A stretch of 64,000 nt of DNA from Macrostomum lignano (lineage: Eukaryota). The DNA is taken from positions 516,520-580,519 of the forward strand of contig NIVC01000112.1 in assembly GCA_002269645.1 (NCBI GenBank). The letters run 5' to 3'. Below are positions 21,090 to 26,224 of this stretch, in pieces. The stretch's first letter is position 1. The number at the start of each line of letters is the position of its first letter. Under the pieces are notes generated by a model. That model was given only the letters and a program-made list of their open reading frames with translations. It was not told the origin of the DNA and did not search any database. The position numbers were made by a program, and so were the translations under genes.

Positions 21090-24000
21090 ATGAGACTGGA
21101 GGCAGCTGCTGTCTCGCTGTGCCTTCTGGCCAGCCTGCTGTCAATCTGCATCAGCGCCCAGCCCGCGGACGTTCGAGACTCCTACTGGGTGAGCCTGTGG
21201 CCACTCGCTCAGCCGCCATTTTAGAGAGGCCAGAGTTTTGCTTGCTTTGAATGCTTTGAATTTCTCTTTTGTTCAGGAAAATTTCACCAACGGACATACA
21301 GGCTCTCTTCTTTGTCCCGGTTTCTTGATATTATTCTTCGGTACATTGTTGATATTAGTGATGTCAATGCGGCTGAGCTAGCTTGCAAATCTCCCACAAT
21401 GGCACTGCTAATCTCTTTCTCCTCTCCCTCTCTCCTCTCCCCTCTGCCTCTCTTCTCTCTCTTCTCTCTCCTCTCCCTCTCACCTCTCCCCTCTGCCTCT
21501 CTCCTCTCTCTCTCCCTCTCTACTCTCTCCTCTCTCTCCCTCTCTCCTCTTTCCTCTCTCCTCTCTCCTTTCTCCTCTCTCTCTCCCTCTCTCCTCTCTC
21601 CTCTCTCTCCCTCTCTCCTCTCTCTCTCCTTCTCTTCTCTCTCTCTCCCTCTCTCCTCTCTCTCTCCTTCTCTTCTCTCTCCTCTCTCTCTCCCTCTCTA
21701 CTCTCTCCTCTCTCTCTCCCTCTCTCCTCTCCCTCTCACCTCTCCCCTCTGCCTCTCTTCTCTCTCCTCTCCCTCTCTCCTCTCCCCTCTGCCTCTCTCC
21801 TCTCTCCTTTCTCCTCTCTCTCTCTCCTCTCTCCTCTCTCTCTCCCTCTCTCTCTCTCTCCTCTCTCACTCTTTCACTCTCTCTTCTCTTACTCTCTTGT
21901 CTCTACTCTGCCTCCCTCCTTCCTCCTCTCTCACTATATCACCCCTCTCTCTCTTATCTCCCTCTCCTTGTTCTCGTAATATTTTACCCCTTCTCTGTTA
22001 CCCACATTTGTTTATCACTGATAACCCTTCGCAGTTTTTTTCTGTCTTAAATTACCGTTTCGAATTTGGCGATTTTTCAATCCAAATGGGGAAACTTTTT
22101 TAGCAGTTATCTGTTATCGGCTAGATTAGCAATCCACGAGCACCGACTTCAGGATTGCTATAAAAATATCTCAAAATGCAGTTCCCGGTGATGAAGTTGA
22201 GTCTATAGCAAAAAGTTGGCTGTGCCTGTAGCCCACGAATCTCGCAATTCCAATATCAGTTTCTCAAGAAAGTTGAAAAGTTTTGCACAGAGCGCAGAGA
22301 TAGCCATCAGTCACTTCTCCAGCTAAAAATAAACTTTCACTTCTCTATTTAAAGCTCAGCTCAAGTCAGAGATAGCAGGAATTGAGTCCAGTTAGCGTTC
22401 GGGATGCCAAGCAAAAAAAAATTAATTTTGTTATTTTCTTATCCGACTGATTTTTTGTTTTATCTGCCCTTGCGGAAAATCCTCGAAAAGAAGTCGTTTT
22501 CTTTCTGTTTCCTACCGGGGCGATTCCATCTGTGCTGCAATGATGAATGCCTCCTGCCGATGACGGGGAACAGCAGCGATGGCCGCGAGTGCATCAGCTC
22601 CGTGTCTTGTGTGTGAGTGCGGCATCGCTGCCCTACCTGGAGCACTTGGCCCGCGCCACTCCATCTCTTCCCTCCATGCCGGAGAGGCCCTAGCGGCCCT
22701 GGGGATCGCAGGAAAATCGAGGAGATCTGGCGCCCTCAGCGCGAAGGGATATATTTTGAAGGAGGGGTTGGGGAGCAGAGAAAGCTGCCGCTGCTGCTGC
22801 AAGACAAATTTCTTTTAGCATTTCTTGCTCCAAATTTAGCTCACAACTTATCATGCTCCGGGGCTGCTATGCAGGATCGGTATAAAATTTCTGCTATGAA
22901 ATGCTGTCAATAAAACGAAATCCTTCATCAACTGTTTCCCAAATGAATTCCGTTTGCCAATGTTCAACAATCTATTTGACACGCCTGTTCCAGGTATGAG
23001 ATGAGTGCTATCTGCTGCTAGACATTGGGGAGGCTGTGGTCGGGGACAGAGTGGGGGAGGTGGAGAAGGATTAGAGGGTCCCGGAAATAGTGGAATCAGG
23101 GGCGGAGAGGGACAGGAGGGAAGAGACAAAATGGGGAAATAGACAGTAGAAGTAGAGCTAGATATAATGAGAAGTAGATAGAAAAGGTAGAGTAGGGAGG
23201 TAGAGATGAGAAGTGGATAAGGAAGATAGAGTAGAGAAGAGATAGAGATGAGAAGTAGATAGGGAAGGTAGAGTAGAGAAGAGGTAGAGATGAGAAGTAG
23301 ATAGGGAAGGTAGAGTAGAGAAGAGGTAGAGATGAGAAGTAGATAGGGAAGGTAGAGTAGAGATGAGGTAGAGATGAGAAGTAGATAGGGAGAGTAGGGA
23401 GGTAGAGATTGGAAGTATCTATGTATGGGAAGATAGCTAGGGGTGCCGGTAGACATTGAGAAGTAGATGGGAGGAAAGGGTAGAGAAGAGGGTAGAGGGA
23501 GACAACAGTGAAGAGAGATAAGTAGCGTGCACAGTATATTGGAAGTGTACAACTGGAATATCATTATGCCAAAGGTAAAATTGGCTAAAGAGTTGACCAG
23601 CTCGACTTAGAGCTCTGGCCGCCAGGTAACACAGGGCCGCAATTTATGGCCGCATCGCAGGCTCTGGTCATGGAGATTATTGCGCAGTACTTCTCTGCAG
23701 GCCAAATAAAAAACAGTATAAAATGAGATAAATGGATCTGCCAAATGTTATAGGCTAATGCGAGCTGTGATAGGTAAGAGAGAGATTTGTGCGGGCAACC
23801 GCTACAAAGCTGGGGTATAGGGCAGGGGTTGGCCAGCTCTTTATCTTCAGGGCCAGGTGGAGAATCTGGCGTATGACCGCGGGCCAGAGGAGGGGAGAGA
23901 GAAGATGGAATAGAAAAGAGAAGAGAGGAGAAAGGAGAGGAGAGGAAAGAGAAGAGGAGAGGAGAGAGAAGAGGAGAGGAGAGAGAAGAGGAGAGAGGAG

Positions 24001-26224
24001 AGAGGAGAGAGGAAAGGGGATAGAAGAGAGGAGAGGAGAGGAGAGGAGAGGAGAGGAGAGAAGAGAGAAAAGAAGAGAGGAGAGAGGAGATTAGAGAGGA
24101 GAGAGGAGATTAGAGAGGAGAGAGAAAATGAGAGAGGAAAGGAGAGGAGAGAAGAAAGAGGAGAGGAGAGAGAAGAGGAGAGAAGAAAGGGGAGAGAAGA
24201 GAGGAGAGGAGAGGAGAGAAGAAAGGGGAGAGAAGAGAGGAGAGGAGGAGGAGAGAGGAGAGAGAAAATAAGAGAGGAGAGAGGAGATTAGAGAAATGAG
24301 TTGAGAAGAGACACAAACCTTGAGACTATTGCGAAGTTTCAAAGGACCCGAGGGCCGGAGAGAGGCTTGGTGGGTCGCATGTGGCCCGCGGGCCGAAGTT
24401 TGCCAACCCCTGTAAGAGGATAGAATATAGGATATAGAGGATAGAATATAGGATATAGAGGATAGAATATAGGATATAGAGGATATAGAGGATAGAATAT
24501 AGGATATAGAGGTTGGAATATAGGATATAATGGATATAGAGGATAGAGAATATAGGATATAGAGGATAGAATATAAGATATAGAGGATAGAATATAAGAT
24601 ATAGAGGATAGAGGACAGATGATAAAACATGGGATATAGAAAATATATGATAGAAGATAGAGAATAGAATATAGACAAAAGAACTTCGTAATTTCCAATT
24701 TCATATCAAATAATTTATCCCATTTCCAATAGTACATCAAGGTCAACCCCTAAAGGCATGACAGGCTGAAGGCAAATCGGGATGAATGACTCACAAACGC
24801 GGCGATATGTTTGGAATTCCCCTCTTGTAGCCAAAAATTCAGGAACTCTGCGCTGAAGTGTTACCCGATACCCTCAGAATCTGAAGCAGTTCAGGTAGGG
24901 CTCTAGAAGAAGCCTCGTGTATGTGCGGGTTGCTTGTCAGAGAGCTGGATCTGCGCCAATAAACCCTTGGGGTGTCAATGTTGGCTTAAAAATGCAAGTG
25001 CAAACAATTGAGGCCTCTATGCTCAAGCTTTGAGCAGCTCTTTATCACAGTTTGCTGATATGCGGGCTTGGTGCAATGTGCTGAGGAAAAAAGTAGAAAA
25101 GTATATATAACTTAAATTAGTCAGTCAGTCAGTCAGTTAGTTAGTTAGTTAGTTAGTTAGTTAGTTAGTTAGTTAGTTAGTTAGTTAGTTAGTTAGTTAG
25201 TTAGTTAGTTAGTTAGTTAGTTAGTTAGTTAGTTAGTTAGTTAGTTAGTTAGTTAGTTAGTTAGTTAGTTAGTTAGTTAGTTAGTTAGTTAGTTAGTTAG
25301 TTAGTTAGTTAGTTAGTTAGTCAGTTTGTTTATTTGTTTGTTTGTTTGTTGTTGATTAATAATGATCAAGAACTCCACAAGAAACTAAAAAAGATTGCCT
25401 GCTCTTGAAATGCGTTAAAAATCTTTTTGGATTCTATTTTTTTCACATTTACGTGACTTTTGAGCGAAAACTTTGTTAAGTTTTTTATTTCATAGAATCT
25501 TCGCACTAGCTGCTATAAGAACTCAGTTTTTTAGTAATGAAGCTCATGCAGGATGATTTAAAAGTGCATAAAATTTCTGGAACGGTGGCTGAGCTGCACT
25601 CGGAGATGATATGCAACGTCAAACCTTCTCCATCGCTTCCGATATCTATCGATTAAGACTGATCCGGGTGACTTTCTGAGTTGTCTATGGCCTAAAGGCG
25701 TCACTCCTTCCTTATCGCTTCCGATATCTGTACTGATCCGGGTGACTTTCTGAGTTGTCTATGGCCTAAAGGCGTCACTCCCTCCTTATCGCTTCCGATA
25801 TCTGTACCGATCCGGGTAACTTTCTGAGTTGTCTATGGCCTAAAGGCTTCACTCCCTCCTTATCGCTTCTAATATCTGTACTGATCCGGGTAACTTTCTG
25901 AGTTGTCTATGGCCAAAAGGCTGCCGAGGGTGCAGGCTGCATTTTAGAAGAGGGAGATAATCCTAACTGCTTAACTCTTATCAAAATCGCCTCGTACCTG
26001 AACACCCACAGAAGGCAGTTCGCAACATCGCAGCCAAGCAACAGGAGTCCGAGGGTGCCGGCACAGCTGGGGCCCTGGCCGCTGACCTGGCCGAGCCCGA
26101 AGACCGCGTAGGCTGGCCGCGGATTCAACAGTCAATGAATCCGGGAGGAGGTCGAAAAAGAGCATGGAAACGGCGTCGCAACGACTTCCGCTGCGTCCTG
26201 CACCCCATCAGCTGCTATGGGTAG
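21090..26224 (+). CDS. Allatostatin-C/somatostatin-family neuropeptide precursor (2 exons, 103 aa)
   Basis: Exon 1 21090-21188 (GCAGCCATG; MRLEAAAVSLCLLASLLSICISA signal + QPADVRDSYW; donor GTGAGC, phase 0). Exon 2 26012-26224 (acceptor CACAG, CTAAC branch-like motif at 25963; KAVRN...GRKRAWKRRR-NDFRCVLHPISCYG*). C-x6-C ring with PISC as in insect AstC (CYFNPISCF), basic cleavage site and amidation Gly. The exon pairing is inferred from phase. Confidence 0.8.
21410..21970. repeat. CT-rich low-complexity tract (intronic)
   Basis: Direct inspection. Confidence 0.95.
23823..24412. mobile_element. hAT-like MITE (CAGGGGTTGGC...GCCAACCCCTG ends) with an internal GA-rich expansion
   Basis: Inverted ends CAGGGGTTGGCCAGCT and AGTTTGCCAACCCCTG. 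No clean TSD. A similar left end occurs at about 57357-57420. Confidence 0.6.
24415..24670. repeat. ~21-bp AG/AT-rich minisatellite (GGATATAGAGGATAGAATATA)
   Basis: Direct inspection. Confidence 0.85.
25122..25325. repeat. (AGTT)n microsatellite
   Basis: Direct inspection. Confidence 0.97.
25632..25915. repeat. 74-bp tandem repeat, about 3.5 copies
   Basis: GATCCGGGTGACTTTCTGAGTTGTCTATGG recurs at 25661 and 25735 (period 74) and in further copies downstream. Confidence 0.9.

Follow-up and report, generated by a model that had tools for sequence, protein, structure and literature searches.

Does the flatworm Macrostomum lignano possess a gene for a neuropeptide of the allatostatin-C (AstC) type? 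The question is raised by a locus at positions 21090-26224, plus strand, of a 64,000-nucleotide stretch of its genome (assembly GCA_002269645.1, contig NIVC01000112.1, positions 516,520 to 580,519; here called the window). An earlier note on this DNA, written from the letters alone, had proposed a hidden gene in which a signal-peptide exon is spliced to a distant exon for a peptide of the AstC/somatostatin type. Here we examined the gene structure, the public annotation, the precursor architecture and the similarity to known precursors. The locus is a copy of Mlig008357 and very probably encodes a 103-amino-acid AstC-type prepropeptide in three exons, two of which are coding.

Coding exons and public gene models

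The signal-peptide exon extends from the ATG at 21090 to a TGG ending at 21188 (translation MRLEAAAVSLCLLASLLSICISAQPADVRDSYW) and is followed by GTGAGC with the donor GT at 21189. The peptide exon, 26012-26224, is preceded by the acceptor context ...acccacAG. Its translation starts with KAVRN and ends with GGGRKRAWKRRRNDFRCVLHPISCYG at the stop codon (in full KAVRNIAAKQQESEGAGTAGALAADLAEPEDRVGWPRIQQSMNPGGGRKRAWKRRRNDFRCVLHPISCYG, then TAG). Both coding-exon junctions lie between codons, i.e. they are of phase 0, and the spliced product has 103 residues. The exon pair as previously described, one with a signal peptide and a phase-0 donor, the other of phase 0 and ending with KRRR, peptide and stop, was correct to the base. 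In the coding sequence (CDS) of Mlig008357 the sole intron, 21189-26011, separates codons 33 and 34 (W33/K34) and has canonical GT...AG borders.

The 103-residue product was 100% identical over its full length to the M. lignano GenBank entries PAA58860.1, PAA75712.1 and PAA90366.1, which are named 'hypothetical protein BOX15_Mlig008357g1/g2'. The same protein cluster includes UniRef100_A0A1I8HYA1, a 146-residue model with the source name 'Allatostatin C'. The gene was not hidden, as had been supposed; it is already annotated and named in public databases and, within a known family, is nothing out of the ordinary. The CDS of the copy on NIVC01000112.1 spans 5135 bp, exactly 21090-26224, and is base-identical to the window. 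The annotation of GCA_002269645.1 was derived from a genome-guided assembly of RNA sequencing (RNA-seq) reads via StringTie, TACO, the TBONE boundary pipeline and TransDecoder (PMC5730564). Because this RNA-seq-derived annotation carries a CDS with exactly this product, a transcript model crossing 21188/26012 is implied. The earlier note had named this junction beforehand as the point at which its proposal could fail. W33/K34 is present in two public protein models (GenBank, which is RNA-seq-derived, and UniProt A0A1I8HYA1), so that this objection does not apply.

A non-coding first exon, repeat-filled introns and three genomic copies

A0A1I8HYA1 has 43 extra N-terminal residues. By tblastn these mapped to 16602-16727 and not to the DNA adjoining the ATG. 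The extension reads into 'AAMRLE' only when the perfect donor at 16727/16728 (CAG/GTGAGT) is joined to the AG at 21086-21087, with exon 2 starting at 21088. This 5' exon, 16602-16727, is non-coding and belongs to the 5' untranslated region (5'UTR); its 5' end lies at or upstream of 16602. Intron 1 (16728-21087) is located within the 5'UTR. Exon 2 (21088-21188) consists of 2 nucleotides of UTR and, from the ATG at 21090, 33 codons. Intron 2 is 4823 nucleotides long, and the coding part of exon 3 (26012-26224) comprises the proregion, the RKR and KRRR sites, the peptide, a Gly codon and the stop TAG at 26222-26224. About 300 nucleotides past the stop codon an AATAAA (26526-26531) is a candidate polyadenylation signal by motif match only. 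We conclude that the gene has three exons, two coding: the exons for the signal peptide and for the peptide are preceded by the non-coding 5' exon, which had been missed in the previous two-exon view. A homopolymer at 16652-16670 has seven Ts in the window and eight are implied by A0A1I8HYA1, shifting the frame of the translated 5'UTR. Therefore, the UniProt and GenBank models derive from different underlying sequences.

Upstream of the 5' exon we noted a CCAAT (16532-16536), an ATTGG (16556-16560) and a TATA-like ATAAATAAAAAG (16588-16599), all motif matches only. A scan of the 5' exon region for bacterial-type promoters and terminators was set aside as irrelevant in a eukaryotic host.

Both introns are rich in tandem repeats. 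Intron 1 holds two arrays, one of a 26-mer (17036-17536) and one of a 14-mer (18196-21009; about 200 copies, 2.8 kb); the latter is thus intronic and does not belong to the promoter. Intron 2 is almost wholly made of repeats, i.e. TC-rich and AG-rich tracts, (TTAG)n and a 74-bp unit. The Mlig008357 protein is encoded on three contigs of the assembly in near-identical copies. All three (3/3) share one protein sequence and the same donor and acceptor; the sole CDS difference is synonymous, and introns and flanking DNA are 97-100% identical, with 97-99% for the flanks. The distance from start to stop codon varies, with 5135, 6039 and 7142 bp. The 74-bp array directly upstream of exon 3 had many more BLAST matches in copy L001 than in copy L003. 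This suggests, without being proof, that the copy number of this array accounts for part of the difference in span.

Precursor layout and predicted mature peptide

The N-terminus carries a predicted signal peptide of 23 residues (21090-21158). MRLE is followed by a 17-residue hydrophobic core, AAAVSLCLLASLLSICI, with Kyte-Doolittle windows of 2.3-2.7 over residues 6-21. Cleavage is likely at ISA/QP, with small residues at -1/-3, a site which we inferred from hydropathy and inspection and not from a dedicated predictor. Intron 2 sits 10 codons past it. The precursor ends with KRRR-NDFRCVLHPISCYG-stop and contains a single copy of the peptide, which begins 66 residues past the signal peptide, at the C-terminus, and ends in Cys-Tyr-Gly. 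The KRRR, a predicted prohormone-convertase site at 26168-26179, directly precedes the predicted mature peptide NDFRCVLHPISCY (26180-26218). The latter has a C-x6-C ring between Cys5 and Cys12, C-VLHPIS-C. The codon for the C-terminal Gly, the presumed amide donor (26219-26221), stands directly before the stop. A second predicted cleavage site, RKR, is seen in the sequence at 26153-26161.

By analogy with the AstC family, the signal peptide would be removed after Ala23 and prohormone convertases would cut at KRRR, probably also at RKR. The latter cut could also leave a Gly-amidated propeptide ending in ...SMNPGG-NH2. A carboxypeptidase and the amidating enzyme would convert the terminal Gly into a Tyr-amide, and Cys5 and Cys12 would form the disulfide ring. 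The product proposed earlier, NDFRCVLHPISCY-NH2, is a plausible prediction from the KRRR site and the terminal Gly. For the disulfide-bonded 13-mer the monoisotopic mass was calculated as 1562.71 Da ([M+2H]2+ 782.36). The 13-mer would be released by neurosecretory cells and act on an AstC-type, somatostatin-receptor-like G protein-coupled receptor (GPCR) of the rhodopsin-gamma class. In Aplysia, AstC with the disulfide activates the AstC receptor at a nanomolar half-maximal effective concentration (EC50); the disulfide cuts the EC50 about 60-fold, from a log EC50 of -6.4 to -8.2 (PMC8786951).

Comparison with allatostatin-C precursors

The M. lignano precursor was compared with 32 AstC precursors, 25 spiralian and 7 arthropod, from the supplements of Thiel et al. 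2021 (PMC8557429). Alignments were anchored on the ring, and the M. lignano sequence aligned gapless; the C-x6-C in 25/25 spiralian references is the anchor itself. As had been claimed, the locus specifies a two-coding-exon secretory precursor of AstC architecture, and its layout matches that of the 25 spiralian precursors. The arm between basic site and ring has four residues in M. lignano, the mode among the spiralian references (16/25). Ring position 3 is His, as in 12/25 (Asn in 11/25), position 5 is Ile (11/25) and position 6 is Ser (13/25). The residue past the ring is Tyr, shared with 20 of the 25, and a Gly past the aromatic residue is found in eight of them (8/25). In protostome AstC the two Cys are separated by a constant six residues (PMC9048919, PMC8786951), the spacing also present in M. 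lignano. Ring positions 1-2 are aliphatic in molluscs and annelids according to Koch et al. 2022 (PMC9048919), and M. lignano agrees.

Gene structure was compared with the literature by intron phase and number. AstC genes of spiralians carry a phase-0 intron within their proregion and no other described (PMC9048919, PMC7536072), and Zhang et al. 2020 reported the same proregion intron in a scallop gene. The M. lignano CDS with its single phase-0 intron agrees with this structure.

The spiralian AstC precursors come from molluscs, annelids, brachiopods and nemerteans, e.g. Crassostrea ...KRSHIRCLVNVIACYRKK, chiton ...KRQHYACLVHVLSCYKRRR and Argopecten ...KRGHIQCLVNLVACYGKK. The chiton sequence CLVHVLSCY and, from the ring to the end, the nemertean AstC2 are close matches to the M. 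lignano peptide. The nemertean AstC2 (...KKRDYVRDCFFHAVSCYGRK; CFFHAVSCYG from the ring on) shares His at position 3, Ser at position 6 and the Cys-Tyr-Gly end that predicts a Tyr-amide, and is 60% identical over the last 10 residues. It differs by Phe-Phe at ring positions 1-2, Ala at position 4 and a five-residue N-terminal arm. In Lineus longissimus an Allatostatin C2 peptide is among 46 peptides confirmed by mass spectrometry (Thiel et al. 2021, PMC8557429). Outside the peptide no alignment was obtained. The M. lignano proregion does not contain the conserved, apparently helical 'L..A....L..LE..E' of molluscan precursors, and the precursor stops at the Gly without trailing basic residues. 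A search of a mollusc supplement returned chance string matches only.

Arthropod AstC of the Manduca/Drosophila type (...KRQVR[FY]RQCYFNPISCFRK) has the same P-I-S-C ring end and likewise a C-terminal C-x6-C ring. It differs by Tyr-Phe-Asn at ring positions 1-3, a free-acid terminal Phe and a longer pyroGlu arm, and its gene has an additional phase-2 intron. The peptide had been called an unusual variant. This holds only with respect to insects; within Spiralia His at position 3, aliphatic residues at positions 1-2, Tyr and Gly are all common. The ring sequence may be a mosaic which begins in the spiralian manner with Val-Leu-His and closes, as in arthropods, with Pro-Ile-Ser.

Chance controls and similarity searches

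How often would such a peptide site be met by chance? Translated in six frames, the window contained a single match, the peptide site, to the strict pattern [KR][KR]-x4-C-x6-C-[FYW]-G?-(stop or basic). In first-order Markov sequence 0.013 such matches are expected per 64 kb (4/300 simulations). Across a whole genome, however, chance would produce further instances of the pattern taken alone. Therefore, the case rests on the conjunction of the pattern with an in-phase signal-peptide exon and with the public gene models.

A full-length hidden Markov model (HMM) of the 32 AstC precursors ranked the spliced protein first of 2293 six-frame window segments (22.5 bits, E 2e-5), which corresponds to an E-value of roughly 7e-4 for the 72,846 annotated genes. 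In the reverse direction, with the M. lignano protein as phmmer query, AstC references occupied ranks 1-16 of 2322 sequences, with pairwise E-values of 0.03-1.

Several results weigh against the assignment as an AstC precursor. An HMM of the 17-column core gave 17.5 bits for the real peptide and 18.6 bits for a chance segment at 48301-48369, plus strand (QKGKHIKKDQHWACLLSFNLISP), which has one Cys, a gap in the ring and no signal exon. The core-only HMM was dropped as a decisive test of significance since this one-Cys segment outscored the peptide; the segment served to calibrate the scores of short HMMs. The similarity is limited to about 17 residues and is weak by itself; as such it is suggestive, not decisive. 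A Pfam scan of the spliced protein yielded zero family matches, and an exhaustive HMMER search over 1.84 billion representatives found no true relative. The sole non-self match, from a word-indexed search of 5.8 billion proteins followed by HMMER, was a repetitive 1318-residue protein with one Cys per repeat and was rejected as spurious. Within the ring, Pro at position 4 occurs in 0/25 spiralian and in 5/7 arthropod references, i.e. it is the arthropod state and the sole departure from the spiralian pattern, and Val at position 1 is found in 0/25 spiralian references, yet is aliphatic like the usual Leu or Met. The UniProt name 'Allatostatin C' is a database label, not an experiment. We infer processing, disulfide, amidation, receptor and neuronal expression from the AstC family. 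Finally, the single synonymous difference among the three genomic copies is uninformative on purifying selection because the copies are too recent and their non-coding DNA is equally alike. An absence of database relatives is usual for short neuropeptide precursors. AstC membership rests mainly on architecture.

Alternative identities of the precursor

Which other precursors could have this architecture? A lineage-specific secreted peptide with a Cys-ring may have come to resemble the AstC layout by convergence. Such a peptide could be a neuropeptide of another kind or have a defensive or reproductive role, acting on a different receptor or on none. The shortness of the shared signal, the absence of a Pfam family and of homologues outside M. 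lignano in the HMMER search, and the equal score of the chance segment with the 17-position HMM are what such a peptide would lead one to expect. A 2018 paper on flatworm GPCRs further states that allatostatin ligands have not been reported in flatworms (PMC6114109). Against convergence stands the coincidence of six independent features with spiralian AstC: the position of the peptide, the four-residue arm, the ring size, ring residues 3/5/6, the aromatic residue with Gly, and the phase-0 intron. In addition, the AstC references filled the top ranks of the reciprocal search. We consider convergence unlikely.

The second alternative concerns the family. The earlier note had taken orthology of AstC and somatostatin as established. 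This is disputed, since two papers of 2022, one by Zhang et al. (PMC8851493) and one by Koch et al. (PMC9048919), make the case that somatostatin and AstC are paralogous or distinct families, both present in early bilaterians. The M. lignano peptide might then belong with the somatostatin/urotensin-related (SSRP-like) peptides. These carry a W-K motif (FWK/IWK) inside the disulfide ring (PMC9048919, PMC7536072). Trp and Lys are both absent from the M. lignano ring, VLHPIS. The rings of vertebrate somatostatin/cortistatin and of protostome SSRP-like peptides are also of different and variable size, whereas the six residues seen here are the AstC constant. Protostome SSRP-like genes have three coding exons, with a phase-0 and then a phase-1 intron, and the mature peptide is split over the last two (PMC9048919). 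In contrast, the M. lignano gene has two coding exons and no phase-1 intron, and the peptide is wholly contained in the last exon. An SSRP-like identity thus is very improbable.

It is equally improbable that the reading frame is untranslated or spurious, belonging to a transcribed region rich in repeats and having entered the databases by automatic calling of open reading frames (ORFs). The locus is indeed embedded in tandem repeats, the GenBank product is a 'hypothetical protein', and the conservation among the copies carries no weight for the reasons given above. On the other hand, a clean signal peptide, an in-phase GT-AG intron, a tetrabasic site and a family-typical C-terminal peptide are very unlikely to arise jointly, with the strict motif alone being as rare as the simulations indicated. 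In CCHamides, another C-x6-C family, the peptide directly follows the signal peptide and has a Gly-His-amide tail past the ring, and this identity was rejected because of the C-terminal location and the Cys-Tyr-Gly end of the M. lignano peptide.

Other features in the window

About 9.5 kb upstream of the AstC-type gene an annotated gene on the minus strand (11363-11605) encodes 81 residues and is found beside 3/3 copies of the AstC-type gene. In its product, MKWQLAALLLACVAVAVMASPSAEAEDSDLAELAQLQEAMESDEVEHLQAKGRYRRFKRKLKRAYKRYLKRHGYRRRVIYG followed by the stop, a signal peptide and an acidic spacer precede a very basic C-terminal part that ends in Tyr-Gly-stop; the product had no Pfam match. 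Judged from these elements, the gene may specify a further precursor of a secreted and perhaps amidated cationic peptide. At 58758-60320, minus strand, an uninterrupted ORF of 520 residues contains metallo-beta-lactamase and alkyl-sulfatase dimerisation domains (Pfam E 1e-18 and 9e-35). This intronless, bacterial-looking enzyme gene could be a horizontal acquisition or simply a conserved eukaryotic homologue. The segment 45613-47730 is a GC-rich block (65% GC at 46-48 kb vs about 37-57% elsewhere in the window) with long overlapping ORFs on both strands (705 residues on plus, 436 on minus) that lack a Pfam match. Either a repeat or a compositional island may account for the block.

Allatostatin C in flatworms

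The peptide strings and accessions had zero matches in the searchable full-text literature. A published flatworm AstC or AstC receptor was not found in the literature searched, which did not cover the survey of Koziol et al. 2016. The flatworm GPCR literature that was examined mentions allatostatin-like receptors; those assigned to a type are of type A or B, in no case C. In the neuropeptide query collection of Thiel et al. flatworm entries were present outside the AstC block, and the part of that block examined contained no flatworm sequence. It is possible, though doubtful, that the Mlig008357 product is the first AstC ligand recognised in the literature on Platyhelminthes, a peptide which the early-branching Macrostomorpha would have retained and which planarians and parasitic flatworms may have lost or changed beyond recognition.

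The gain in new biology is small, as gene and name were already public and the peptide fits the spiralian AstC pattern. The case demonstrates that a genuine split neuropeptide gene is recoverable from raw eukaryotic DNA by reading without tools. An AstC-type precursor in M. lignano would place such a ligand in a flatworm which is used as a transgenic laboratory model, and would add a data point on the bilaterian peptide systems which flatworms have kept. If the assignment is true, the peptide would be a ready ligand for deorphanising flatworm somatostatin-receptor-like GPCRs, which in a transgenic model is of limited but real interest.

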